Shown in pieces: positions 1 to 15,466 of a stretch of DNA of 64,000 bases. A program made the position numbers and the translations under genes. Location of the stretch: the sequence record PP355766.1, one strand, 5' to 3'. Numbering within the stretch: position 1 is the first letter of the stretch; the number at the start of each line of letters is the position of its first letter. The notes below the pieces were generated by a model. The model had not been told where the DNA came from. It saw only the letters and a list, made by a program, of their open reading frames with translations, and made no database searches.

Positions 1-151
1 CCCTTGTGTCCGAGGATACCTCTAGACGGTCATATCTCTTAGCCCAGAGAGAAACTAGCTTTGGGTGTTTCGGGGTTACTCCTTCTCGGCTCTACTGTTA
101 ACCCTTATTCGAACTACATACCGAGTTATGAGCGTACTCACTAGTTTAAAT

Positions 152-228
152 TGGCGCGGCTAACGGGATTCGAACCCGTGGCTCCGACGTGACAGGCCGG
201 TATGTTGACCGCTGAACACCATAGCCGC
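152..228 (-). tRNA. tRNA-Asp(GUC)
   Basis: Cloverleaf: acceptor GCGGCUA/UAGCCGC, loop CU-GUC-AC, GGUUCGAAUCC T arm, encoded CCA. Confidence 0.95.
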
Positions 229-236
229 TTAATTTG

Positions 237-350
237 TTATTCCGGTTCGTATTCCATTAAGTCGTCTGACTCACAAGTTGGACACTCCCAATGGCATTCA
301 CTTAACTCACCACAATCGGAACAAATGTATAACTTAACTTCATCTTCCAT
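237..350 (-). CDS. 37-aa zinc-ribbon-like microprotein (MEDEVKLYICSDCGELSECHWECPTCESDDLMEYEPE)
   Basis: Below track cutoff; GAGG RBS, directly downstream of promoter 381-409, two CxxC pairs. Confidence 0.7.
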   Translation of the reverse strand: MEDEVKLYICSDCGELSECHWECPTCESDDLMEYEPE

Positions 351-380
351 TTGCTTTTCCTCTTTCGTTTCAATATAAAT

Positions 381-409
381 ATTATACTAAATTTCAGGGT
401 ACTAGGCAA
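381..409 (-). promoter_or_regulatory. T5-type sigma70 early promoter
   Basis: TTGCCT-17-TATAAT with A/T-rich UP element. Confidence 0.8.
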
Positions 410-421
410 ATGAATTTTTCA

Positions 422-637
422 TTAATCGTCTTCTTCGTCCCATGAGAGGGAGTGCATGAAGATCGGTAGAACTGTAGGTTCTACGTCAAGCGACGGGTAG
501 AAGTAAGTTTTACCTTGAGACAGGTCAATGAACGTAGGGGTTCTACCCTCCTGCATGTGTTCATCAACCTTGTCTAGGGCGTCGTTTAACAGTTCGAAGC
601 AGTCAGTATTCGCTCCGCAAACAACGATAAAATCCAT
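422..637 (-). CDS. hypothetical protein (71 aa)
   Basis: ORF coupled to the upstream ORF (stop and start share base 637). Confidence 0.7.
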   Translation of the reverse strand: MDFIVVCGANTDCFELLNDALDKVDEHMQEGRTPTFIDLSQGKTYFYPSLDVEPTVLPIFMHSLSWDEEDD

Positions 638-1011
638 TAACGACCCCCGTTCGGGAAACCGGAGGCAAGCAGGAAGCGAACAACGTCTTCCAGCGACGGG
701 CCTTCTCCATCTTCTTCCAGATGGAAAGGCAGAATAGCGTACTGCATGTCAGCTGGTGCTACCGGGGTGAAGGTAGGCTCTGCGGGAGCTTCTGCCATGA
801 ACACTGCGGTTCCGTCAACCAGACGATCGATCGCTTCACAGACTTCTAGCTGTTCTTCGATCTTGGCCTCGCGTTCGCGCATCAGAGCCAGCAGTTCAGT
901 GCGGTATTCTTCGATACGGCGGTCTAGAGACTCGATGTTATTGGACAGGTTATCCTGTACAATCATCAGGCGGACTACAGCAGAATTTCCATTAGTTGGT
1001 CGTGTAAACAT
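637..1011 (-). CDS. hypothetical coiled-coil protein (124 aa)
   Basis: GAGG RBS; heptad-like E/R/L-rich central region. Confidence 0.75.
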   Translation of the reverse strand: MFTRPTNGNSAVVRLMIVQDNLSNNIESLDRRIEEYRTELLALMREREAKIEEQLEVCEAIDRLVDGTAVFMAEAPAEPTFTPVAPADMQYAILPFHLEEDGEGPSLEDVVRFLLASGFPNGGR

Positions 1012-1031
1012 GATATTTCCTCGATTGATTA

Positions 1032-1304
1032 TTAGATAAAGTCGCCGGTAGAGACTACCAGTTTAATGCTTTTACGGAAGATTTCGTGCATACCGTCGTG
1101 AACCATTACTGTCCCGACCAGTTTTGGAAGGTAGACTTCCACATCAATATTACCATATGGCATGGCGTGCTCGTCAGTAAGTTTAGTCCATAACTCCGGC
1201 TGAAGCTCGCAGTTATAGAACACCATCCATTCATGATCACCATCCCATCCGTCCCAGTTAAGAACCAGTGCGGATTCAATACCTGTTGCAGTAACCTTTG
1301 ACAT
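1032..1304 (-). CDS. hypothetical protein (90 aa)
   Basis: GAGGAG RBS, immediately downstream of promoter 1336-1364. Confidence 0.8.
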   Translation of the reverse strand: MSKVTATGIESALVLNWDGWDGDHEWMVFYNCELQPELWTKLTDEHAMPYGNIDVEVYLPKLVGTVMVHDGMHEIFRKSIKLVVSTGDFI

Positions 1305-1335
1305 TTGCTAACTCCTCTCGTTAATTTATGAATCT

Positions 1336-1364
1336 ATTATAGCAATTATAAGAGCGTTTAGCAA
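1336..1364 (-). promoter_or_regulatory. T5-type early promoter
   Basis: TTGCTA-17-TATAAT followed by AGATTCATAAATT (PN25-like initial transcribed sequence). Confidence 0.85.
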
Positions 1365-1381
1365 ATGAATTTTTGAATTAT

Positions 1382-1535
1382 CCGCTCCGAAGAGCGGTAA
1401 TCCAGGCTTGCAGCTGTTAGTTACACTTGGTTTGAAGTTGTCTAGGACATTAACTAGAGGTTGATGGCCTCCCCGTTTCTGCAACTAACATTTCACAGCT
1501 TCTCGGACGTTTGACGGCCCTGACCGAAGTCTCAC
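1382..1535 (-). ncRNA. candidate structured ncRNA 3' of tRNA-Val
   Basis: 11-bp helix 1415-1425/1480-1490 (G.U wobble on minus strand), internal hairpins, 3' CCGCUC-UUCG-GAGCGG hairpin. Confidence 0.5.
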
Positions 1536-1542
1536 TGTAAAT

Positions 1543-1618
1543 TGGTACTTGCTGCTGGTTTCGAACCAGCTACCCTCGCCGTGTAAAGACGATGCTCTCC
1601 CGATTGAGCTAAGCAAGT
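1543..1618 (-). tRNA. tRNA-Val(UAC)
   Basis: Cloverleaf, loop UU-UAC-AC, CCA. Confidence 0.95.
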
Positions 1619-1621
1619 ATT

Positions 1622-1698
1622 TGGTGGTCAATAGTGGATTCGAACCACTGTAGTCTCACGTATGAAGCGAGTGCATAAACCATCTCTGCCAACTGACC
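1622..1698 (-). tRNA. tRNA with CAU anticodon (Met or lysidine-Ile2)
   Basis: Cloverleaf, loop UU-CAU-AC, A73, CCA. Confidence 0.9.
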
Positions 1699-1703
1699 TT
1701 ATT

Positions 1704-1779
1704 TGGTACTCCGAACTGGACTCGAACCAGTGACCTAACGATTATCGGTCGTTTGCTCTACCAACTGAGCTATCGAAGC
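1704..1779 (-). tRNA. tRNA-Ile(GAU)
   Basis: Cloverleaf, loop CC-GAU-AA (C33), CCA. Confidence 0.9.
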
Positions 1780-1780
1780 A

Positions 1781-1939
1781 TTATTGTTCCTGCTGGCGGA
1801 CGCAGATTTCCTCGTCCGGGTGTATTTTAGCGATCCTAGCGTCTTCCTCGGCTTCATTGTAGGTGTCGTGAAAAGCCGGTGCCAAGAATACAATCTCTTT
1901 TGTGTGGGTATTAATTAGCATACCTTGATAGCGAGTCAT
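1781..1939 (-). CDS. hypothetical protein (52 aa, MTRYQGMLINTHTKEIVF...)
   Basis: ORF fills the gap between the upstream ORF and tRNA-Ile; GAGG RBS. Confidence 0.65.
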   Translation of the reverse strand: MTRYQGMLINTHTKEIVFLAPAFHDTYNEAEEDARIAKIHPDEEICVRQQEQ

Positions 1940-1946
1940 AGTTACC

Positions 1947-2138
1947 TCAACGTTTACCATTACGAGGTGCTCCGGGACGTTTAGCAGCCCTCAACATGGA
2001 GGCTTTAACCTTAGCTATGTTTTCGGGGGTACGGTCGCTAGGTTTTAGCGCGGCTGCACTACACCAGTTTTCGCCTTCCCAAAGGGTATATACTACTATA
2101 TCTGTATTATCGAACTTCTTTTGTGTGAAGTTAAACAT
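1947..2138 (-). CDS. hypothetical protein (63 aa, MFNFTQKKFD...)
   Basis: AGGAG RBS before ATG 2138; the longer track ORF overlaps tRNAs. Confidence 0.7.
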   Translation of the reverse strand: MFNFTQKKFDNTDIVVYTLWEGENWCSAAALKPSDRTPENIAKVKASMLRAAKRPGAPRNGKR

Positions 2139-2153
2139 ACCAGCTCCTAGAAT

Positions 2154-2230
2154 TGGATGCTCCGGCAAGATTCGAACTTGCGATCTCCAGCTTATGAGAC
2201 TGGCGAGGACGGCCTCTCCTCTACGGTGCA
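2154..2230 (-). tRNA. tRNA-Met(CAU), possibly initiator-type
   Basis: Loop CU-CAU-AA, A11-U24 pair, A4.A69 mismatch, U73, CCA. Confidence 0.8.
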
Positions 2231-2232
2231 AT

Positions 2233-2308
2233 TGGCAGGGGCAACAAGAATCGAACTTGTGACCTAAGGCTTCAGAGACCTCCGCTCTACCTACTGAGCT
2301 ATACCCCA
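2233..2308 (-). tRNA. tRNA-Gln(CUG)
   Basis: Loop CU-CUG-AA, U1.U72, G73, CCA. Confidence 0.9.
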
Positions 2309-2318
2309 ATTATGCGCA

Positions 2319-2431
2319 CTCTGCTGAGTACAACGTTGTGTCTAGGGCCAGAACATAAATGCTTGCATTTATGGGAGGCGGCTAGAAGAGGGATGTGACC
2401 CAGAGGGCTAACCTCGTCACTCCCAGCAGAG
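2319..2431 (-). ncRNA. candidate structured ncRNA between tRNA-Arg and tRNA-Gln
   Basis: Closing helix CUCUGCUG/CAGCAGAG; inner GUGAC/GUCAC and CAUAAAUG-CAAG-CAUUUAUG hairpins. Confidence 0.55.
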
Positions 2432-2437
2432 ATTTTA

Positions 2438-2512
2438 TGGTACACCATCGAGGAATCGAACCTCAACCATAGAGTTCGTAGCTCTATATTCTATCCATTA
2501 AACTAATGGTGC
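2438..2512 (-). tRNA. tRNA-Arg(ACG)
   Basis: Cloverleaf, loop CU-ACG-AA, CCA. Confidence 0.95.
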
Positions 2513-2519
2513 AGTAATC

Positions 2520-2596
2520 TGGAGGGATATCTTGGATTCGAACCAAGATAGACTCGATCCACAATCGAGGTCATTATCCAGTTATGATAATATCCC
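2520..2596 (-). tRNA. tRNA-His(GUG)
   Basis: Loop UU-GUG-GA, acceptor GGGAUAU/AUAUCCC, U73, CCA. Confidence 0.9.
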
Positions 2597-2599
2597 AAA

Positions 2600-2742
2600 T
2601 TTGAGCACCATCGAGGGCTGATCAGACCTCCACAGATAGAGTGCACATCGCACACATTATCCGGTTAGACCGCGTATTGGTACGTTGCACTTCGTGCAGC
2701 ATATTAATCCAATATGCGACTCATCGAACGATGATGCTCAAA
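2600..2742 (-). ncRNA. candidate ~143-nt rod-like ncRNA
   Basis: 14-bp terminal helix UUUGAGCAUCAUCG/CGAUGGUGCUCAAA with one U.G wobble, nested inner helices. Confidence 0.6.
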
Positions 2743-2744
2743 TT

Positions 2745-2845
2745 TGGTGGCCCTAAGAAACTCTTCCCACTCACAACTAGTTGATTACTTCTGGATTTTC
2801 GCCCAGAAAATTCTCTAGAAAGGGGCAACCGTTACTCGTCGGGCC
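2745..2845 (-). ncRNA. CCA-ended tRNA-like RNA lacking a normal anticodon or T loop
   Basis: Acceptor-like GGCCCGA/UAGGGCC followed by A-CCA; inner UUCUGG/CCAGAA hairpin. Confidence 0.6.
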
Positions 2846-2851
2846 ATTATT

Positions 2852-2939
2852 TGGAGGAAGATAATGGAGTCGAACCATCACCGATTGCTCAGTGGGCTGG
2901 TTTTCAAGACCAGTTGCGTACCACTACGCCCTATCTTCC
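2852..2939 (-). tRNA. tRNA-Ser(UGA)
   Basis: Loop CU-UGA-AA, long variable arm, CCA. Confidence 0.95.
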
Positions 2940-2946
2940 AATTATT

Positions 2947-3033
2947 TGGTAGGGATGGAGGGGGTCGAACCCACACGGATATTTCACCACTAGAACCTAA
3001 ATCTAGCGCGGCTGCCAATTTCGCCACATCCCC
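2947..3033 (-). tRNA. tRNA-Leu(UAG)
   Basis: Loop UU-UAG-GU, long variable arm, CCA. Confidence 0.95.
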
Positions 3034-3038
3034 ATTTA

Positions 3039-3200
3039 TTAGTTTTCTTTGATCAGACTTTTAATCTTCTCAAAGTTTTGGTCAGAAATACAGATACCTT
3101 CCAGGGCAAAAGAGGCTCTAGAACTTTCTAATACCATGTCTACCACAGCATCAAAATTTTCCTCTCTAAAGAAGTTTTCGCTTTCATTTGCCTTTTCCAT
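3039..3200 (-). CDS. 53-aa VbhA-like (Fic-inhibitor motif) microprotein
   Basis: MEKANESENFFREENFDAVVDMVLESSRASFALEGICISDQNFEKIKSLIKEN; SFALEG fits (S/T)xxxE(G/N); AGGGG RBS. Confidence 0.65.
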   Translation of the reverse strand: MEKANESENFFREENFDAVVDMVLESSRASFALEGICISDQNFEKIKSLIKEN

Positions 3201-3219
3201 ACGTACCCCTAACTTTAAT

Positions 3220-3298
3220 TGGTGGAGTCACAGAGATTCGAACTCTGCTGCTATCCTCGGTGCAAGCGAGGTGTCCACTCCTAGCAGACCCTGACCCC
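3220..3298 (-). tRNA. tRNA-Ala(UGC)
   Basis: Loop CU-UGC-AC, G3.U70, CCA. Confidence 0.95.
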
Positions 3299-3316
3299 AA
3301 TAATTTGTTAAGGCAA

Positions 3317-3501
3317 TTAATCCGGTGCGCGTAATACCCTGAGCAATTAGCCATGCAAGGATACCCGCTCTTCACAAATACGATACACTCTACGCTTACC
3401 AGGCGTTTCGGAGAGCCACTCCGCTATTCTTGCAAACCCTCAGTTCAATTACCGAGCAAGCTGCAAGCGTGTTTTTTGGTTCCGGCTCTGTATCAGATTA
3501 A
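3317..3501 (-). ncRNA. candidate structured leader or ncRNA (~185 nt)
   Basis: No credible ORF; closing UUAAUCUG/CCGGAUUAA, nested GAUACA/UGUAUC, AGAGCC/GGCUCU and CUUGCA/UGCAAG helices. Confidence 0.45.
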
Positions 3502-3523
3502 TTCCTTAACAAACTATATAAAT

Positions 3524-3552
3524 ATTATATCAATTTGTTAAGCATTTAGCAA
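3524..3552 (-). promoter_or_regulatory. T5-type early promoter
   Basis: TTGCTA-17-TATAAT. Confidence 0.85.
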
Positions 3553-3571
3553 CTGAATTTTTCAGTAAATT

Positions 3572-3648
3572 TGGTACTCCCGACGGGGTTCGAACCCGTG
3601 TTCCCACTGTGAAAGAGTGGTGTCCTAACCAGCTTAGACGACAGGAGC
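3572..3648 (-). tRNA. tRNA-Glu(UUC)
   Basis: Loop CU-UUC-AC, CCA. Confidence 0.95.
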
Positions 3649-3658
3649 ATTTTAAATT

Positions 3659-3734
3659 TGGCAAGGGAAGGAGGAGTTGAACCTACCGATCTCGGAGTCA
3701 AAGGCCGATGCCGTAACCACTTGGCTATTCCCTT
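3659..3734 (-). tRNA. tRNA-Gln(UUG)
   Basis: Loop CU-UUG-AC, G73, CCA. Confidence 0.9.
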
Positions 3735-3745
3735 TCAATATAAAT

Positions 3746-3774
3746 ATTATCTCAAATTCTAAAGCATTTAGCAA
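3746..3774 (-). promoter_or_regulatory. T5-type early promoter
   Basis: TTGCTA-17-GATAAT directly upstream of tRNA-Gln. Confidence 0.75.
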
Positions 3775-3828
3775 TTGAATTTTTCAAGTATTTTGGTAGT
3801 GACCCGGCAACGCAGGTCACTATGCAAA

Positions 3829-4323
3829 CTACTCGCCGTGGTCTACACGAATGAGCGGACAAAGTTTGTCCTTCTTGTAGATTCGCATCTTTTGGTAGAT
3901 GTTACCGAAGCGAAGCTCTTCATCGCGAGCATTATACTCTTTCTGTGCCCTTTCAAAGGATTTACTCGCGTTCCATTCCTGGATCCGATCCCCTATCTTA
4001 GCGCAGGCCCAGCCGATCCCAGTTATCGCCAGCAGAATCGCTACTATCGTAGATAGTCCTGCTAGACTTAACCCTACAAGCATGTACCAGGGAGTAATTC
4101 CCAGCTCAAAGGTGAGGCCCAAGAACGTAGATAAGATACTTCCCATCCCCAAGGAGAAGAGTACAGCAATAGCAGTTACGCCAATCTGTAGCAGGAAATA
4201 CCACACTGAGTGCCAAAATAGGCTACACAAGGTGACTCTGTTGTCGTTCAGCCGATAGGTGAAAGACGCGGAAGAGAAATTAAGCCACTTGTAGAAAAAA
4301 CCTTTACGTTTAATATTCAGCAT
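3829..4323 (-). CDS. membrane protein (164 aa)
   Basis: Two long hydrophobic segments. Confidence 0.8.
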   Translation of the reverse strand: MLNIKRKGFFYKWLNFSSASFTYRLNDNRVTLCSLFWHSVWYFLLQIGVTAIAVLFSLGMGSILSTFLGLTFELGITPWYMLVGLSLAGLSTIVAILLAITGIGWACAKIGDRIQEWNASKSFERAQKEYNARDEELRFGNIYQKMRIYKKDKLCPLIRVDHGE

Positions 4324-4333
4324 ATTTAGCCTA

Positions 4334-4543
4334 TTACTTGAGTTGATTGATTAGGAAAACTTGTAGCGCGATAATGAATGCGGCATAGGAGTCAGAGCCT
4401 TTACCACCTTCGTTCTCATTAACTTCTTTTAGTAGGGCTTCAAAAGCTGCTTTGTGACGCTCATAGTGCCCTCTAACTGTCGGGCCAGCATCCTCTAACA
4501 TGCCTAAAAGCATATAGTACTGGGTTTGTAATTGGGCGTCCAT
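4334..4543 (-). CDS. hypothetical protein (69 aa, MDAQLQTQYY...)
   Basis: TAATG coupling with the upstream ORF. Confidence 0.75.
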   Translation of the reverse strand: MDAQLQTQYYMLLGMLEDAGPTVRGHYERHKAAFEALLKEVNENEGGKGSDSYAAFIIALQVFLINQLK

Positions 4544-4740
4544 TAGTCCTCCCACACGATTTTAATCGAGAGAAGACGATTTACAGGAATGACCAGCATA
4601 GTCTCAGACCGTTTATTAAGGATTTCCAGGATATCCCCATCACGATGGAGCAGACGTTTAGGACTGATATCTGTTACTGTGGACTCTAGGACGATACCAC
4701 TGTCATCCACGAAGGATACGATTGCGTTTTTAGTAGACAT
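4543..4740 (-). CDS. hypothetical protein (65 aa)
   Basis: AGGAG RBS after the tRNA. Confidence 0.75.
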   Translation of the reverse strand: MSTKNAIVSFVDDSGIVLESTVTDISPKRLLHRDGDILEILNKRSETMLVIPVNRLLSIKIVWED

Positions 4741-4761
4741 TTTAGTCTCCTGTTATGAAAT

Positions 4762-4839
4762 TGGTGGCTCCCGGAGGATTCGAACCTGCCTACCTTCCGC
4801 TTATGAGGCGGGTGCTCATACCCAATGAGCTTGAGAACC
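4762..4839 (-). tRNA. tRNA with CAU anticodon (elongator Met or Ile2)
   Basis: Loop CU-CAU-AA, A73, CCA. Confidence 0.9.
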
Positions 4840-4843
4840 TGAG

Positions 4844-4863
4844 AAGGGCTATTTCTAGCCCTT
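4844..4863 (-). terminator. hairpin (terminator or processing site)
   Basis: AAGGGCUA-GAAA-UAGCCCUU between the ORF and the tRNA. Confidence 0.45.
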
Positions 4864-4869
4864 AGTTAT

Positions 4870-5163
4870 TTATACTGCTGCTTCATCTTCCGGGGTGCCT
4901 TCCACCGGAGGTTCTTCAGTAGGGGTATCCTCTACCGGAGTGTCTTCAGTTGGAGCATCTTCAACCGGCTCAGGATCTTTCACGAAGCCTGCTTCTTCAT
5001 CGGAGATCACATACAGATCCTGAATATCCTCTGTATTGATCATACGAGCTACGCTACCATCTTTATAGAAGACGGATTTAGTGCCCTCGTTGCGAGCCAT
5101 GTTCGCATCGATAATCAGCTCAGTGAGAACCCCTTTCTTTAAATATTCAATTTTGTAAGCCAT
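4870..5163 (-). CDS. hypothetical protein with acidic Pro/Glu/Asp/Thr 5-aa repeats
   Basis: GAGG RBS; PVEDA-PTEDT-PVEDT-PTEEP-PVEGT tail. Confidence 0.8.
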   Translation of the reverse strand: MAYKIEYLKKGVLTELIIDANMARNEGTKSVFYKDGSVARMINTEDIQDLYVISDEEAGFVKDPEPVEDAPTEDTPVEDTPTEEPPVEGTPEDEAAV

Positions 5164-5197
5164 TTTATCCTCTACTTTCTCTTTGATTTAAAGAACT

Positions 5198-5226
5198 ATT
5201 ATACAAAATTTCTGACAAAATTGCAA
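5198..5226 (-). promoter_or_regulatory. T5-type early promoter
   Basis: TTGCAA-17-TATAAT. Confidence 0.85.
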
Positions 5227-5314
5227 GAAAAATTTTGTAGAATCAATCTCAGTCTGCGCCCTGCGGGCTTTTTACCGCTGCCCACTAAATATTACGTGTG
5301 GGCAGCGATTAAAG

Positions 5315-5390
5315 TGGTACTCCCTACAGGATTCGAACCTGTGACCCACGGTTTAGAAGACCGTTGCTCTATCCTCTGAGCTAAGGAAGC
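5315..5390 (-). tRNA. tRNA-Arg(UCU)
   Basis: Loop CU-UCU-AA, CCA. Confidence 0.95.
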
Positions 5391-5391
5391 A

Positions 5392-5556
5392 TTAATAAAG
5401 TTTAAGTGTTTTGACAACCAGATCATGAACCTGTTCAGAATACCGGCCAACGCTCTTATGCAGCGACTCCTTAAATTCTAGAGTACGTCTAGCGATTAGC
5501 TGCTTCTGTTCAGGTGTCAGATTCGGTGGTGGACGTTCATAAGGTGGTGTACGCAT
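5392..5556 (-). CDS. hypothetical protein (54 aa, MRTPPYERPPPNLTPEQKQ...)
   Basis: AGGAG RBS; ends 1 nt before tRNA-Arg. Confidence 0.7.
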   Translation of the reverse strand: MRTPPYERPPPNLTPEQKQLIARRTLEFKESLHKSVGRYSEQVHDLVVKTLKLY

Positions 5557-5569
5557 GTTGGTCTCCTAA

Positions 5570-6320
5570 GTATCTTTAAGAACTCTCGTGAAAGCTCTTA
5601 AAGATACCGCCAGTAGGTAGGGGCCTTCCCCTGTTTAAGCTATGCGGCCCTTCTGTCAGACGTATCTTCCAGTTATAGTCAAGGTGACTAATATACCTTG
5701 CCAGATCCCGGCCAACGGATATCCGTCGGCTAATGCGGTCTAGGCGAGGGCACACTCCAAACAGGGGCACTTCTAGCCTGTGTAAGGGTGCTATAAATAG
5801 TGGTTATGCTTTCGCTCGGGGTGACTCCGGTCATGACTCCATTGTCACATGCTTACACAGGGTATACGAGCTTCCGCGGAGCTGTATACTCAGCCGTGTC
5901 CCACTTAGGTCTCGGAGCGACCGTTTGTACGAACGGTTATCCGAATACTCTTTCCCACTTAGAGTCAGGCGAGATCCCACCTCGCCAAAGTTCATACGAT
6001 CATCATGCCGTATTTAAGGACTAGTTTTGGCACTTCTGGAGAGCCATCCTCCACGCGGTCTGTTAAAATCACACCTCCGAATTTTCGATGTGAAGTTCGG
6101 CTATCTCTAGCCATCCAGCGTATGGTCGCTTCGCACCTGCCACTCTTACGTTCAAATCGGTTTAGGCGGTGGCAGCCCTCCGAAGTTCCGAGTTTGGTTG
6201 AGGCCGTCAGGTTTCCTCGTGGTTTAGCTGTTTCGTTCCCGCGAGTCTCCTAAGTCTTTCCCTAGGAGGGGAGGAGGTACTCCAGCAGCGAGTGGTTCGC
6301 CAATAGAACCATCAGTTATC
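5570..6320 (-). ncRNA. candidate large multi-helix ncRNA (~700-750 nt)
   Basis: No credible ORF; more than ten helices including perfect 5777-5786/5852-5861 and 5628-5636/5759-5767; wobbles favour the minus strand. Confidence 0.65.
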
Positions 6321-6327
6321 TAGCTCT

Positions 6328-6413
6328 TTCCGACCGCAGGATTCGAACCTGCACTTTCCGCATCTGGGGATAGCTCCCCGCGTGCAGAAGTCTACCAATT
6401 AACTTAGGACGGC
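6328..6413 (-). ncRNA. tRNA-like element with anticodon arm replaced by an extended hairpin
   Basis: D arm AGUU-AAUUGGUA-GACU, T arm GCAGG-UUCGAAU-CCUGC, central UUCUGCA/UGCGGAA plus GGGGA-GCUA-UCCCC, no CCA. Confidence 0.7.
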
Positions 6414-6419
6414 AGTGTT

Positions 6420-6840
6420 GCTACATAAGTGATTTCGACACCCCACTATGGTGGCAATAACCAGCACCAGACGCTATACACATGTCTCCAATTTGCAGCC
6501 TAGGCAGGTCAGTGTGGGAGCTATACGAGTTTCTCAGGCTCAGCCCCCACCTCTCCGGCAGGCCACGCACCATGCTTCATTCTGGTCGAACAAGTTAAAG
6601 TGAGATTCCACCATTTTCTATAAATCAGGAGAAGAGTTTACGAGGCTACGGGACAGCTCCCGAGTTTTACAAGAGATCTCTAACCTACGCCCGTCCAATA
6701 CGCTCCCTGGCCGGTATCCGGACTGGATGCACGAACTTTGTTAGGTGATCACTCTTAACTCACCGATTCTATTCAACGAATCTTAATGCTCGACGAGTCT
6801 TACATTAAAACAAGTTCAGCGTAATCGGCCCGCTGTTCTC
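6420..6840 (-). ncRNA. candidate structured ncRNA (~400 nt) at the 5' end of the transcript
   Basis: Starts just after promoter 6857-6885; multibranch 5' domain and a long nested rod (6514-6522/6542-6550). Confidence 0.55.
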
Positions 6841-6856
6841 TCTAATTTATGAAACT

Positions 6857-6885
6857 ATTATATCAACTTTTTAAGCATTAGGCAA
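6857..6885 (-). promoter_or_regulatory. T5-type promoter driving the non-coding locus
   Basis: TTGCCT-17-TATAAT overlapping the hydrolase stop; not followed by an RBS/ORF. Confidence 0.8.
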
Positions 6886-7332
6886 CTGAGATTTTAATTT
6901 ATAGAACACATGGTTGCCAATTTTACTTGTTCTTTTGAAGTCCTTGTCTTTTGTCCAGTAAGGTTTAGTATCTTTACTGTGAAAGTACAAAGCTCCCTTC
7001 GTCGGATCTACTGGAAGATCCATATAGTAAACTAGTCTAGCTATCTCTTTAGCTTGTTTCCACTCTTCGTCTTTACGATCGAGTTTATGTTTCTTTTTAC
7101 CAACCCAGCTGAACTGCCCTGGTTGATAGACTACTTTACAATATGTGGACGGGAATTTTCCATAGTTAACACGATTTTTCGTTACTTGTGCAACTGCGGT
7201 CATTCCTTTAACTCCTTCCCCTCTAGCTTCAAAGTACGCATTTTTAGCTATGCACTCTATCTCATGCGCATCAATCTTTGCCTGCGCATGGAAACTAGTG
7301 AGGATGGAGATCATTAGAATGGCTGCTTTCAT
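6871..7332 (-). CDS. SleB/Hydrolase_2-type cell wall hydrolase with signal peptide
   Basis: YFEARGE, VAQVTKNRV, QFSW, GALYFH and IGNHVFY motifs. Confidence 0.9.
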   Translation of the reverse strand: MKAAILMISILTSFHAQAKIDAHEIECIAKNAYFEARGEGVKGMTAVAQVTKNRVNYGKFPSTYCKVVYQPGQFSWVGKKKHKLDRKDEEWKQAKEIARLVYYMDLPVDPTKGALYFHSKDTKPYWTKDKDFKRTSKIGNHVFYKLKSQLPNA

Positions 7333-7365
7333 TATTTCTCCTTTACTCTTTGATTCAAGAATAAT

Positions 7366-7395
7366 AGTATATCAAGAAATCAGCCATTTAGTCAA
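7366..7395 (-). promoter_or_regulatory. sigma70 promoter
   Basis: TTGACT-18-TATACT. Confidence 0.6.
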
Positions 7396-7396
7396 A

Positions 7397-8401
7397 TCAA
7401 ATTTTCAATTTCGATTCGATAGTTTTAATACAGTACGCTTCTACCAGGGCGTCAAACACCGGATCATGTTTCGACGGGTAGACTCCCTCAGGAATCAGGT
7501 TGTAACGCTCGATTACGTCATGTGCGTATACTTCAGCACAGCGTACCAATGCTTTCCAGTCTCCTCCGAGAGCCTCAAAATAGTCACGCGGGTTACGGGC
7601 GCTAGAAATATCCCAAAACTTCCACGGAACGATCGCAGGGTCAGATGGGGAGAAGATGTTAGCCTGAGCTGCCACTGTTTCGTAGATGGACATGTCGAAC
7701 TGCGGGCCATTACCATAGTGGCGCAGAGAACGAGTGTCAATGCCCTGCTCGTCGATAATACCTTCGATTACCTGTTTTGCCTCTACGAACGGGCAGATCA
7801 GATCCATGAACGTATGCTTGGATACAGGTGATTCATGGGTCGGATTGCAAACTAGAACGGTAGACTCACCGTCTTTAGCGTTCAGGGCTTCAATAATGGA
7901 CAGTGACGGGGCACTACCAGCACGGGCCTCATTCATCCAGAATGCAATAGTTCCGGCGGACACTTTAGCACCTAGGGCCAACTGCTGGGCCACATTAGGG
8001 GTGCCTAAAACGATATACGGGTCTAGCGACAGATCTTTCAGCAGTACAAAAGCGAAAGACGGCATAGCGATAAAGGTGCTCTTGCAGTCTCCCGGAGTTC
8101 CCAGAGATTCGATATCGCAAACAGAGATCCAGCGGTCTTGTAAGTTTTGCATATTGTTTCCTTTGTTATTAAAGTTGCTTCTAGATGTGCTACCACATTT
8201 AGAAGCCACCTCCGGTGGTGGCTTAGTCATATCTTCGGACACATCCCAGTTTTCTTCCATAGACGGCCAGTCAGCCGCCCAATCTTCGAGTTCTTCGTAG
8301 CACGAATCCATCAGTTCCCGGGAGTTGACCCTAGAGTAATCTAGGGCCGACTTATGTGTCGCTGCACGATTGAAATCGTTTTTAGCTACAAAATTTCGCA
8401 T
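7397..8401 (-). CDS. DEDDh 3'-5' exonuclease (domain starts at internal ATG 8152), in frame with an upstream ~83-aa ORF
   Basis: CDIES (ExoI), GNGPQFD (ExoII), HDPVFDA (ExoIII); AAGGA RBS before 8152. Confidence 0.8.
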   Translation of the reverse strand: MRNFVAKNDFNRAATHKSALDYSRVNSRELMDSCYEELEDWAADWPSMEENWDVSEDMTKPPPEVASKCGSTSRSNFNNKGNNMQNLQDRWISVCDIESLGTPGDCKSTFIAMPSFAFVLLKDLSLDPYIVLGTPNVAQQLALGAKVSAGTIAFWMNEARAGSAPSLSIIEALNAKDGESTVLVCNPTHESPVSKHTFMDLICPFVEAKQVIEGIIDEQGIDTRSLRHYGNGPQFDMSIYETVAAQANIFSPSDPAIVPWKFWDISSARNPRDYFEALGGDWKALVRCAEVYAHDVIERYNLIPEGVYPSKHDPVFDALVEAYCIKTIESKLKI

Positions 8402-8811
8402 TATGCCTTCTTAGCGGGTTTGCGTTTTTGATTACGAGGCTTGTTTGCCTTGCCCGTAAATTTAATACCTACGCCGTAGCACAGGGCGCGAACATTCTCA
8501 CGGCTGTACTCGCAGCCAAAGATATTCGGCTTGACGCTACCGAAACGGCCCTGGGTCTTGCGCAGGACTTCTTTGGTGTCCGCCTTATCCGGCGTACTCC
8601 AGCCAACGATCTTCGAGACGTAGCCAGAGGTAGAACCCTTAGTTACCGGCTTTTTACGACGCGGGGCCGGTTTGCTTACAGCTGATGCTGCTTGAGTATC
8701 AGCCGGATGTTTACGCAGATGACGCTCCAGACGTGCTTTGCGATTCTCTTCAGTTTTAGGAAAAGTTGCAACTTTGGTTTCTACTGCTTTTTTAGAGGTC
8801 TGCTTAGCCAT
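8401..8811 (-). CDS. highly basic hypothetical protein (136 aa)
   Basis: K/R-rich; AAAGGA RBS; downstream of promoter 8857-8885. Confidence 0.8.
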   Translation of the reverse strand: MAKQTSKKAVETKVATFPKTEENRKARLERHLRKHPADTQAASAVSKPAPRRKKPVTKGSTSGYVSKIVGWSTPDKADTKEVLRKTQGRFGSVKPNIFGCEYSRENVRALCYGVGIKFTGKANKPRNQKRKPAKKA

Positions 8812-8856
8812 GATTTATTTCCTTTGTTTTGATTGGTTTCGTTAATTTATGGATCT

Positions 8857-8885
8857 ATTATACGTTAATTTTTAGCGTTTAGCAA
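8857..8885 (-). promoter_or_regulatory. T5-type early promoter
   Basis: TTGCTA-17-TATAAT. Confidence 0.85.
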
Positions 8886-9215
8886 CTGCGTTTTTTCATT
8901 TTCATCTACAAGCTCATCGAAGATGATGTACTCGTACCTATTACCGCCCGATGTGCTTCGCTTGCTCTTCCGAGCTGATGTACTGGTACCCGCCTTTGTT
9001 GTACGCTGGTGCTGTACAGAGTTTCTTTCGCTCAATTTCTTTAAGAGCGGCTCGTTCTCTTTCAGCCATCTCAGGATCCAGGATTTCCCGTGCCTGCGGT
9101 CTTGGTGGTAGACGCGTAGAGGGTTCCCCGATTTTGACGCTTCCAGAAACGCGGCGTAGAGATCGAGCTGGTACTGTGGTACGTTTGGGAACAAATCCCT
9201 CAAATCTGGTGCCAT
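8865..9215 (-). CDS. hypothetical protein (116 aa) with RRHGKS and YIIFDE motifs
   Basis: TAATG-coupled to the ORF 9215-9376. Confidence 0.65.
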   Translation of the reverse strand: MAPDLRDLFPNVPQYQLDLYAAFLEASKSGNPLRVYHQDRRHGKSWILRWLKENEPLLKKLSERNSVQHQRTTKAGTSTSARKSKRSTSGGNRYEYIIFDELVDENEKTQLLNAKN

Positions 9216-9376: not shown

Positions 9377-9858
9377 CACATATCCTCCATTTCTAGCTCG
9401 GTCATGCGAACATTTAGCAGGTTATCTGCGGCCTCATTACCTTCTACACCGGAGTGGCCCTTAACCTTAACGAAAGTTGGGATCTCATTATGGTTGAGAC
9501 GATACTTCTTGAGTTCGTCAATAATCCACTTCCACTGGTCTAAGTTCAGAGGTGTATCACCATCTGCCTTCTTCCAGCCTTTACGTTCCCAGCCCCAAAC
9601 CCAGGACTCACAACCATTCTTAACGTAGGTTGAGTCCAGATAGATTGTCATTGGTCGGCCAGGATTTTTGTTAGACCATAGCAGAGCCTCTAGGACTGCT
9701 TGAAGCTCCATCTCGTTGTTAGTTGTGTTGCGTTTGGGAGCAGACTTGGTTCCGATTTGCTCTTCGCTGGAGTTGTAAACTACCATAGCCCAAGCACCAA
9801 CATTGTCTACCCCACGGGTATTACCGCGGCAACCACCATCAGTATAAACATGAAACAT
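9376..9858 (-). CDS. rnh: ribonuclease HI
   Basis: YTDGGC, TNNEMEL, YLDS, VKGHSG..GNEAAD. Confidence 0.97.
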   Translation of the reverse strand: MFHVYTDGGCRGNTRGVDNVGAWAMVVYNSSEEQIGTKSAPKRNTTNNEMELQAVLEALLWSNKNPGRPMTIYLDSTYVKNGCESWVWGWERKGWKKADGDTPLNLDQWKWIIDELKKYRLNHNEIPTFVKVKGHSGVEGNEAADNLLNVRMTELEMEDM

Positions 9859-13141: not shown

Positions 13142-15466
13142 TTACAGAGTACAACCGCCACTGGAACAACCCTGCTCTGCTGCAGAGCCTCCGGTATCTA
13201 CGTCAAAGTTTGCGTAGTAGAGGTTCTTAATCCCGTATTTAGTGGAGTTAAGGAGATCTTTGATAATCTCAGTACCCGGAATAATACCTCCAGGATACTT
13301 GTTAAAGTCGTAGTACAGGTTGGCACTAATAGCCTGATCCGTAAACTTCTGCAGAACTGCTAACCATTTAATGTGCTCAGTACGGTCAATGTCGAACGCA
13401 TACTTATAGGACTGCATGGTGTCCCAATCGTCTAGGCCCGGAGCTACGGTGATTACTTTGTTAACGCCCGAAGTCTTGATAGTTACTGCACTGCGAGGAG
13501 GTTCTACTGCGTTGGTAACGCCAATCAATACTGAGCTGGACTCCCCAGGCATACTTGCGGTCAGAACGGAGTTACGCATACCGTGAGCTTTGATCTCTTC
13601 ACGGAGGCTCTCCCAGTCCATCTCGAGACCTACGGAAACCAGGTCATCCACAGTCTTCTTGTAAGTATCGATTAACAGCGTACCATCAGAAGTATGAGTA
13701 CGGTGGAACCACGCACAAGGGCCGATCTCTTTTGCCAGACGTACAGACGCTTTGTGAAGGAAGAACGATGCCTTCTCTGCCTCACGGTGGATCCAGTTAC
13801 GGGCTTCTTCGCCTTCGAATGCCAGGCCTTCAGCGGCCATCGCTCCTGCGGCGTTCATCAATCCAATACCTACGTTACGGCGGCGTAATGCAGTGTATTT
13901 CATAGCCGGGAACGGATAGTGCTGAATCTCGATGATGGTATCAACGAACTTCAACAGGATGTAAGAGATCTTCTCCCATTCTTCCAGAGTTTTGATACGG
14001 CCCAGGGCGAATCCGCCTAAGTTGCACAGAGATACTTCCCCATACTCTGAAACATCCATTTTATCCAGTTCTTCGTCTGTACGGTACAGGTCTACTACAT
14101 GAGGGATCGGGAACGTTGGCTGTACAATCTCAACACAAAGGTTGGACATACGCACAGGATCTTTGTAACGGCTGTTACGGTTCACTTCACCAGCGTCCAT
14201 AGTGTACAGGCGGCCAGTCTCCATACGTACGGTTTTCCAGAACTCAATCAGTTCTGCGGCAGGAATCACCGGTGCTACAGGGAGAACTTCGCCCTTGAAA
14301 CCACGTTTGGTAACACCCGCTAGGCGTTTTTCGGCTGCGATGTATAGACGTTCAAATTCTGCTACGTCGCCGGAGTCAAATGCTGCGTATACTTCTGGAG
14401 CGTACAGGAAGCTCATCAGTGTGATGTTCTCTTTACGCAGGAAGCGTTTCAGGAGAATACTGTTGAACTTCAGATTGTAGTCCATCTTATCGATTTTCTT
14501 TTCATCAGGGGAACGGTTGCTCTTAGCTTCCATTACCTGAATGATTTCCGGATCGAAGAACGCAGTGTAAACAGTTGCAGAACCACCACGAGACTGCTGA
14601 GTGTTAGCTTTTACGGAGCGGTCGATGTGTCGATAATATGGCAGTTTTCCAGAGTGTGGGAACGCGCCTTTTCGCACCGGATCAGCAATTGATCTACTCT
14701 CAAGATGATAGCCGATCCCTGCTCGGGCAGCGACCATTTTGAAGACGACGTGCTCTGCTGCGTCAATGGAGTCCAGGGTGTCAGTACCATCAACAAGACA
14801 GCAAGAAGCGAAGCCCCTGTCAGCACTCCGAAGGCCCACGAGCGGCGGAGTTGGGACGTTGATTTTCTGTAGCGACAGCGCGTTATAAAGGTCGATTGCA
14901 TCGAGCATACTCCAGTGAGGTTGAGAAAGCATTGCCATTGCCATACCCATGTAGGCAAACTGCGGAGTTTCATAGATCTCTTCCGTATAAATATTACGTC
15001 TAGAGTATTTATCCATGAACTGCTTCAGACCAGCATTAGTGAATAGTTCGTCACGGCTGTGGTCGATAACTTCGTTTAGAGCTTCGAACTGGTCGTCAGA
15101 GATCCAGCCGCTCATATCTTCCCACGCTCCCAGCTCTACCATGTGGTCGTGGAAGAAACGCAGAGATGGCGGGGTGTAAGAATCAAACAGGTTCTTACGG
15201 AGCTGGGCTAAACGCAGCTCTAGAGCGAATCGGTCGTAACGATGATCACGCTCGATCATTGATTCGGCAGACTTAATCAGCATTGTTTGCAGATCGTCTG
15301 AGTGTACATCACCTTTCGGCAGGTTCTTAACTGCGGCTACCGCTACCGGAGACCACGGCACATCGCTTCGGATTCCGATGTATTTTGCCCAGTCATTCAG
15401 CTTCTGGGCCATGAACGGCTCTTTTGTACCGTCACGCTTGATAACGTATTCAATACGTTGGGTCAT
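13142..15466 (-). CDS. nrdA: class Ia ribonucleotide reductase alpha subunit
   Basis: ATP cone (VIKRDG), ASCC, SNLCVEI, KNLYY, C-terminal Cys pair; AAGGAG RBS before 15466. Confidence 0.97.
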   Translation of the reverse strand: MTQRIEYVIKRDGTKEPFMAQKLNDWAKYIGIRSDVPWSPVAVAAVKNLPKGDVHSDDLQTMLIKSAESMIERDHRYDRFALELRLAQLRKNLFDSYTPPSLRFFHDHMVELGAWEDMSGWISDDQFEALNEVIDHSRDELFTNAGLKQFMDKYSRRNIYTEEIYETPQFAYMGMAMAMLSQPHWSMLDAIDLYNALSLQKINVPTPPLVGLRSADRGFASCCLVDGTDTLDSIDAAEHVVFKMVAARAGIGYHLESRSIADPVRKGAFPHSGKLPYYRHIDRSVKANTQQSRGGSATVYTAFFDPEIIQVMEAKSNRSPDEKKIDKMDYNLKFNSILLKRFLRKENITLMSFLYAPEVYAAFDSGDVAEFERLYIAAEKRLAGVTKRGFKGEVLPVAPVIPAAELIEFWKTVRMETGRLYTMDAGEVNRNSRYKDPVRMSNLCVEIVQPTFPIPHVVDLYRTDEELDKMDVSEYGEVSLCNLGGFALGRIKTLEEWEKISYILLKFVDTIIEIQHYPFPAMKYTALRRRNVGIGLMNAAGAMAAEGLAFEGEEARNWIHREAEKASFFLHKASVRLAKEIGPCAWFHRTHTSDGTLLIDTYKKTVDDLVSVGLEMDWESLREEIKAHGMRNSVLTASMPGESSSVLIGVTNAVEPPRSAVTIKTSGVNKVITVAPGLDDWDTMQSYKYAFDIDRTEHIKWLAVLQKFTDQAISANLYYDFNKYPGGIIPGTEIIKDLLNSTKYGIKNLYYANFDVDTGGSAAEQGCSSGGCTL

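Follow-up and report, generated by a model that had tools for sequence, protein, structure and literature searches.

We analysed the tRNA cluster of a T5-like phage in a 64,000-nt stretch of sequence record PP355766.1 (hereafter the window, whose positions are used throughout). On comparative sequence evidence, the cluster comprises five structured non-coding RNA genes, which we call B, C, D, E, and the RNAX homologue, together with one remnant, A. These five RNAs are probably of the same kind as the stable RNAs annotated in T5 and, like them, lie in the early tRNA region. Three of the five are relatives of known T5 stable RNAs; the finding is real and largely a rediscovery. The covariation evidence is new, as are the families B and C and the layout of the RNAX core.

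Five structured RNAs in the tRNA cluster

The initial annotation of this region had counted at least eight structured RNAs between the tRNAs, which we label A to H. B, C, D, and E proved to be real, but F, G, and H together form a single RNAX-like unit and A is what deletions left behind, giving five RNAs and a remnant. The broader claim, that structured, strand-specific RNAs are embedded in the tRNA transcription units, is upheld by the conserved folds of B to E, the early promoters, and the 15 tRNAs on the minus strand. The elements are as follows.

1382-1535, minus strand: A, a spacer remnant that follows tRNA-Val and includes a GC-rich UUCG hairpin (1382-1397)
2309-2431, minus strand: B, a 113-nt RNA (2319-2431) followed by a conserved tail of 11 nt, flanked by tRNA-Arg(ACG) and tRNA-Gln(CUG); a separate family
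2600-2742, minus strand: C, a 143-nt RNA directly 5′ of tRNA-His, recognized by covariation and a covariance model; a family of its own
2745-2845, minus strand: D, T5 RNAI homologue, recognized with nhmmer, an iterated hidden Markov model (HMM), and covariation
about 3312-3503, minus strand: E, T5 RNA2H homologue between a promoter and tRNA-Ala, recognized with an iterated HMM and covariation
5570-6850, about 1.28 kb, minus strand: RNAX-like long non-coding RNA (H, G, and F together), T5 rnaX homologue by blastn match and gene order

Eight misc_RNA genes are annotated in the tRNA region of the T5 reference genome (NC_005859.1), most of them noted as "stable RNA with unknown functions": RNAIII (106 nt), RNAI (107 nt; T5s02), RNA1 (144 nt), RNA2H (172 nt; T5s04), RNAIV (103 nt), RNA2 (125 nt), RNA3 (73 nt), and RNAX (719 nt; T5s08). 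Three of these, RNA1, RNA2, and RNA3, are described there as tRNA-like. D, E, and the RNAX core matched RNAI, RNA2H, and RNAX, respectively, in blastn, nhmmer, and iterated HMM searches, and the gene order is the same. The expectation that some members had already been named in older T5 work was therefore correct, with D, E, and the F-G-H unit being homologues of named T5 genes. RNAIII was found in T5 and two related loci only. Searches with Rfam 15 at gathering and permissive thresholds reported only tRNAs in the window, T5, phiR2-01, KKP_3711, and My1, and no paper on stable RNAs of T5 or BF23 turned up in the open literature that we searched.

Pairing is conserved and specific to the transcribed strand

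For each predicted fold, we compared the fraction of paired cells at the true partners with that obtained when the partners were slid along the alignment. Overall, 96 to 99% of the cells were paired, against 25 to 51% after sliding (C, 96% against 30 to 41%; D, 97% against 26 to 51%; E, 99% against 33 to 41%). Compensatory changes occurred at 16 of 34 pairs in B, 16 of 47 in C, 7 of 23 in D, 19 of 35 in E, and 13 of 27 in the RNAX core. Covariation across the Demerecviridae, which had been named as the check on these elements, supports B, C, D, E, and the RNAX core with compensatory pairs, but A was not retained as a conserved element. The loops and junctions of the small RNAs were also invariant across subfamilies.

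When read on the minus strand, the helices of C, D, and E held 29, 23, and 58 G.U cells, respectively, against 3, 0, and 0 A.C cells (110 against 3), and the covariance model of C scored 171 bits on the minus strand against 27 bits on the plus strand. This asymmetry rules out an explanation at the DNA level. G.U wobbles had been said to occur only on the transcribed strand, and they are indeed nearly exclusive to it.

Folding energy was a poor guide here, because D and E covary strongly despite insignificant z-scores (-1.6 and -1.1, respectively). The scores of B, C, and F were similar on both strands, and z-scores used as a filter failed to separate the real elements from the doubtful ones. 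The description of the gaps as self-contained folded elements holds for B to E by covariation, but not for F (z of -3.8, equalled on the opposite strand), H (z of +0.15, no excess energy), or A (z of -0.47).

D and E belong to T5 RNA families

D lies between tRNA-Ser and tRNA-His, as RNAI does in T5. A search with T5 RNAI found KKP_3711 at an E value of 2e-10, and S124 and PRF-SP13 were matched at the places of D; T5 RNAI and D also matched identical places in Epseptimavirus and KKP_3711 genomes. An iterated HMM united D and RNAI among ten distinct sequences with E values from 2e-20 to 5e-27, and local alignment gave a z of 5.1. D begins with GGCCC and terminates with GGGCC-A-CCA followed by AAATT. 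All tRNAs of the region have this 3′ context, with an encoded CCA. The profile matches place D in the T5 RNAI family.

Similarly, the iterated HMM joined E with T5 RNA2H, and the order of promoter, RNA, and tRNA-Ala is common to both. The promoter upstream of E (3524-3552, minus strand) has the form TTGCTA-17-TATAAT, and T5 has P13b before RNA2H. By this profile and its gene order, E is assigned to the T5 RNA2H family. The terminal helices of RNAI and RNA2H are the same as those of D and E, and the CCA end is common to D and RNAI, whereas the interiors differ through insertions and deletions.

B and C form families of their own

C folds into a 14-bp terminal helix enclosing three internal helices. 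Its covariance model matched Sugarlandvirus genomes, Enterobacter phage KKP_3711, Salmonella phage PRF-SP13, Erwinia phage KEY, and Pectobacterium phage My1, but gave no match in T5; S124 has tRNA-His without C. T5 RNAIII also lies directly 5′ of tRNA-His, and we considered whether C is its homologue. Neither nhmmer nor covariance models gave a match in either direction, so that position is all the two have in common and any relatedness is undetectable by these methods. Near the 3′ end of C, a hairpin (2614-2634, minus strand) that includes GGAGG is invariant in sequence, loop included, in seven phages, and it may be a binding site.

B was compared in six sequences from several Demerecviridae lineages. 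Its covariance model matched KKP_3711, Erwinia phage KEY, Serratia phage Kamaji, and Pectobacterium phage My1, with no match in T5. B was unannotated in all 25 of the matches listed, out of 83 matching records. The tail of B, GUGCGCAUAAU (2309-2319, minus strand), is not part of any predicted helix; the GCGC at its core does not vary in six phages of several genera, and the other positions hardly do. The covariance models of B and C were also searched against both T5 RNAIII and RNAIV and matched neither. B and C are further RNA families, unannotated in the records examined.

Architecture of the RNAX-like unit

F, G, and H make up one unit running from a promoter to a hairpin, in which F and H are not self-contained elements. 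The parts of the unit and its surroundings are as follows.

6857-6885, minus strand: early promoter of the unit, TTGCCT-17-TATAAT with a TG extension and the same upstream context as the other early promoters; the T5 equivalent is P16-17
6620-6850, minus strand: 5′ domain, with a closing helix (6836-6850 with 6620-6633) in 8 of 8 aligned sequences and a variable interior
6432-6444, minus strand: near-invariant motif GGGGUGU(C/G)GAA, with one variable C/G position, in all genera compared, including Mccorquodalevirinae
6313-6431, minus strand: 12-bp helix (6420-6431 with 6313-6324) enclosing the tRNA-like domain
6328-6413, minus strand: G, a tRNA-like domain with acceptor, D, and T arms, matched by the Rfam tRNA model
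6294-6310, minus strand: 5-bp hairpin directly 3′ of the enclosing helix
5570-5608, minus strand: 17-bp terminal hairpin, kept in all subfamilies, with few changes and G.U pairs on the minus strand only
5392-5556, minus strand: 54-aa open reading frame (ORF) between the terminal hairpin and tRNA-Arg(UCU)
5315-5390, minus strand: tRNA-Arg(UCU), the conserved 3′ neighbour by ARAGORN and by gene order in relatives

The order of promoter, RNA, and tRNA-Arg(UCU) was present in all Demerecviridae loci where the compared stretch reached that tRNA (32 of 41). Variable sites in 5570-6850 were spread evenly over the codon phases (40/38/38; three neighbouring genes gave 0/1/16, 10/4/79, and 17/4/52), and of its 25 insertions or deletions, 19 were not multiples of three. 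The stretch is non-coding, given this lack of codon periodicity and the frame-breaking changes. Rfam searches reported no family match for the unit other than the tRNA-like domain. T5 could be aligned with the window RNAX in blocks only (6415-6444, 6325-6354, 5665-5694, and 5575-5604).

The best-supported part is the core around G. The 12-bp enclosing helix was paired in 99% of cells, with compensatory changes at 7 of its 12 pairs, and it is retained in Eps7, which has another insert in place of the tRNA-like one. In the hairpin directly 3′ of it, the innermost pair is CG, UA, or AU among 12 sequences. A pattern search with GGGGUGU(C/G)GAA found 31 viral and 11 metagenome loci, three of the latter being new variants. 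On the 5′ side, the closing helix showed no compensatory changes, and the domain ranges from 51 nt (T5 type, a hairpin with no interior) to about 500 nt. The 3′ part has islands of conservation, among them a hairpin with two compensatory pairs (6055-6084) and a small one (5677-5689); over its full length, it aligned too poorly to yield a complete structure. In short forms of RNAX, tRNA-Arg follows the terminal hairpin within 5 nt, whereas long forms have ORFs inserted between the two. In the window, substitutions in the 54-aa ORF fell 3/2/17 by codon phase (p = 7e-5), and the ORF had no match in protein-family searches. Relatives have one or two other ORFs at this insertion point.

G, searched alone, scored 35.1 bits on the Rfam tRNA model RF00005 (cut-off 29); it went unreported in Rfam searches of 9 kb and 14 kb, and ARAGORN did not call it. 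A stretch of 19 nt stands where a tRNA has its anticodon loop, two of the acceptor pairs are non-standard, and the acceptor is followed by AAAG rather than an encoded CCA. Its T-arm and acceptor pairs covary. In other records, G is labelled tRNA-OTHER, tRNA-Sec, or tRNA-Ser. The same long-arm variant also occurs in two metagenome contigs, where the extra hairpin shows compensatory changes.

The T5 and window forms of RNAX both lie between a promoter and tRNA-Arg(UCU), but they differ in length (719 nt in T5 against about 1.28 kb) and in the 5′ domain (51 nt against about 420 nt). Furthermore, the window RNAX has a different and longer replacement of the anticodon arm and, unlike T5, an ORF between the terminal hairpin and tRNA-Arg. 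T5 RNAX itself contains a tandem duplication of about 83 nt flanked by a small conserved hairpin motif (9468-9581 of our stretch L003), which explains its length of 687 nt, compared with 605 nt in other Tequintavirus.

Some known RNAs resemble this unit in part. In Y RNAs of the YrlA type, a tRNA-like part sits at the end of a long helix formed by the flanks, and G likewise has acceptor, D, and T arms at the end of a flank-built helix. However, G sits within a transcript of more than 1 kb and has neither an anticodon loop nor an encoded CCA, and Rfam reported no Y RNA or YrlA family on the isolated RNAX core at an E value of 10 or below. GOLLD and ROOL are large ornate RNAs near phage tRNA genes that are curated in Rfam. 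Like them, RNAX is a long structured non-coding RNA beside phage tRNA genes, but it is modular with large variable inserts, and neither family matched the window RNAX at any threshold used. In T4, the tRNA region gives rise to RNAs C and D, small stable RNAs cotranscribed with the phage tRNAs.

Element A is a deletion remnant

The spacer corresponding to A is about 440 nt longer in three Sugarlandvirus relatives (roughly 630 to 680 nt in total), where it holds a homologue of T5 RNA1. Compared with them, the window has undergone two deletions, one of which removed the RNA1 gene while the tRNA-Val gene was kept, and RNA1 was absent across the whole window. What is left ends in the UUCG hairpin just ahead of the promoter at 1364. 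A is therefore a deletion remnant and not a conserved element. In the relatives, about 160 nt of further conserved non-coding sequence precedes the RNA1 homologue (14399-14559 of locus L007, with equivalents in L002 and L046).

Early promoters, tRNAs, and the source record

The window derives from a Klebsiella phage of the T5-like genus Sugarlandvirus (Demerecviridae). Bases 1 to 9000 are identical to Klebsiella phage vB_Kpn_AM_K4 and 94 to 97% identical to many Sugarlandvirus genomes. Record PP355766.1 itself is 288,685 bp long and classed under Straboviridae, yet it carries the Sugarlandvirus region identical to the window; it looks like two phage genomes fused during assembly.

ARAGORN found 15 tRNAs between 152 and 5390, all on the minus strand. 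Seven early promoters on the same strand split the region into separate transcription units, and the small RNAs and neighbouring tRNAs are set apart by A/T spacers of 2 to 8 nt. The remaining ORF-free gaps, 3735-3828 and 5164-5314, hold end-of-unit hairpins and the following promoter rather than RNA genes.

Starts at 8885, 6885, 5226, 3774, 3552, 1364, and 409, minus strand: T5-type early promoters of the form TTGCTA-17-TATAAT with a common upstream context
3796-3823, minus strand: end-of-unit hairpin just ahead of the promoter at 3774; not an RNA gene
5258-5306, minus strand: two hairpins between tRNA-Arg and the promoter at 5226; not RNA genes

Two of the tRNAs deserve comment. The 79-nt tRNA-Ala(UGC) (3220-3298, minus strand) is called by ARAGORN only, the Rfam tRNA model being silent even in a 1.2-kb search. 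The tRNA with a CAU anticodon (4762-4839, minus strand) is called Met in the window and tRNA-Ile in the annotation of K30lambda2.2; it is probably of the lysidine-dependent Ile2 type, which is also present in T5.

Neighbouring proteins

Two protein genes lie upstream of the RNAX-like unit and had been proposed as possible partners of the RNAs.

7397-8401, minus strand: DEDDh 3′-5′ exonuclease, 334 aa, T5.087 homologue, recognized by motifs, profile, and structure model
8401-8811, minus strand: basic DUF7022 protein, 136 aa, T5.089 homologue (PF22887, E value 1e-50)

In the 334-aa protein, residues D96, E98, D236, H312, and D317 were invariant among 24 sequences. It scored 18.7 bits against PF16473 (cut-off 27), a family that is precomputed for 28 of 35 homologues, and it matched the PHROG family phrog_255, annotated "exonuclease", at an E value of 1e-57. 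Its AlphaFold model (pLDDT 81) had T4 DexA as the best fold in the Protein Data Bank (PDB; E value 8e-5), followed by human 3′hExo. PDB searches with the exonuclease sequence and its profile gave no match, and NCBIfam gave none. Taken together, the motifs and the model identify a predicted DEDDh exonuclease with a fold nearest that of T4 DexA, a DNA exonuclease. The suggestion of a neighbouring DEDDh nuclease was thus well founded.

Its proposed role as a functional partner did not fare as well. The endolysin gene (6871-7332) and a promoter stand between the exonuclease gene and the RNAX unit, and in T5 the distance from T5.087 down to RNAX is about 2.9 kb and spans six annotated genes. Several unrelated genes separate the two in T5, phiR2-01, and DU_PP_V. 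The neighbourhood is therefore no argument for a partnership, because the exonuclease gene belongs to another unit and lies several genes away elsewhere.

The DUF7022 protein has a pI of 10.7 and consists of 26% lysine and arginine, and at 8401 the end of its gene and the beginning of that for the exonuclease overlap. Its homologues came from records of T5-like phages only, apart from two filed under Salmonella enterica. The structure model (pLDDT 61) was too poor for a fold search.

Proposed biogenesis and possible role

In enterobacteria, RNase P makes the 5′ ends of tRNAs, and RNase E and exonucleases make the 3′ ends. The RNAs described here would be cotranscribed with the tRNAs by the host RNA polymerase, and the host tRNA-processing enzymes may free them by cutting at the ends of the neighbouring tRNAs and at the acceptor-like terminal helices of the RNAs themselves. 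The long helix between the 5′ and 3′ ends could then shield each RNA and let it accumulate. Such release and helix protection would be consistent with the label "stable RNA" given to the T5 homologues.

Once released, these RNAs would imitate parts of tRNAs and engage host proteins that bind or cut tRNAs. D has an acceptor helix with CCA, and RNAX has acceptor, D, and T arms. In T5, a tRNA neutralizes the PARIS defence system (PMC11464382), and the tRNA-Tyr of T5 rescues retron Eco7 toxicity, as summarized elsewhere (PMC10644984). These tRNA-like traits and the documented anti-defence roles of T5 tRNAs make a trans-acting, tRNA-mimicking role the most attractive hypothesis, and the RNAs are perhaps accessory tRNA mimics of this kind, although we hold this tentatively. 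They look accessory rather than essential for processing, given their patchy presence, the way RNAX modules vary, and the loss of RNA1 next to a retained tRNA-Val gene. It is conceivable, if rather doubtful, that RNAX is a modular scaffold displaying a non-decoding tRNA mimic to host tRNA-binding or tRNA-cleaving proteins, with B to E belonging to the same fast-turning accessory set in a phage-host conflict over tRNAs.

Several points weigh against reading all five as stable structured RNAs with such a role. The label "stable RNA" comes from the T5 annotation, in which B and C have no counterpart. Most of the 3′ part of RNAX shows patchy conservation with few supported helices. The comparative sets consisted of 5 to 12 sequences that are kin by descent, which inflates the shuffle statistics. 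The mimic role, for its part, would be an analogy for every member.

The elements might instead act only in cis, as folded spacers that guide or order the cuts of RNase P and RNase E or stabilize tRNA precursors, and have no role after release. Their constant location within tRNA units fits this idea, as do terminal helices that look like acceptor stems and the way C, B, and E abut the 5′ ends of tRNA-His, tRNA-Gln, and tRNA-Ala, respectively. However, tRNAs persist where an element is missing (tRNA-His without C in S124, T5 without B and C, and the window without RNA1), the invariance of loops and junctions across subfamilies exceeds what a guide for cutting needs, and T5 annotates the homologues as stable species; we consider a purely cis role unlikely. 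These phages show a high turnover of tRNA genes, the tRNA model scores G as a tRNA whose anticodon arm is disrupted, and RNA1, RNA2, and RNA3 of T5 carry a tRNA-like annotation, so one could also regard the elements as decaying tRNA genes with no present function. This is already contradicted for B to E, which had no match to the tRNA model even at an E value of 5 or below and whose non-cloverleaf folds are kept by compensatory changes across subfamilies. The helix around G covaries as well, whereas neutral decay would lose the pairing, and for the set as a whole, decay is very improbable.

A coordinated RNA operon that is processed by, or works with, the DEDDh exonuclease and the DUF7022 protein had also been proposed. 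The PF16473 family found in the homologues is named for a 3′-5′ exoribonuclease, the structural neighbour 3′hExo trims stem-loop RNAs, and the very basic DUF7022 protein is encoded by a gene overlapping that of the exonuclease. On the other hand, the best structural match is T4 DexA, an enzyme acting on DNA; both protein genes are part of a different transcription unit, on the far side of the endolysin gene; unrelated genes intervene before RNAX in the three phages named above; and no sequence feature links the protein set to the RNA set. We regard such a partnership as quite improbable. Finally, the region is rich in inverted repeats, the folding z-scores of B, C, and F are similar on both strands, and RNAX and C are covered by hypothetical proteins in some records, all of which would suit features that act at the DNA level (an origin, nick sites, or nuclease targets) or hide small protein genes. 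The strand asymmetry (110 G.U against 3 A.C cells; 171 against 27 bits for the C model) and a substitution pattern with no codon periodicity and mostly frame-breaking insertions and deletions already contradict this explanation, which is barely credible.

The stable RNAs of T5 have had no Rfam family, and the comparative evidence shows them to be selected, structured families across the Demerecviridae. The RNAs become searchable and can be annotated in records that now leave them blank or carry spurious "hypothetical proteins" and "tRNA-OTHER" in their place. As T5 tRNAs are known to counter defences directed at tRNAs, a role of these RNAs in the same conflict can be framed as a testable question. 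If the scaffold reading of RNAX and its companions were true, the tRNA region of the Demerecviridae would be an RNA-based counter-defence island, with a role beyond codon supply.

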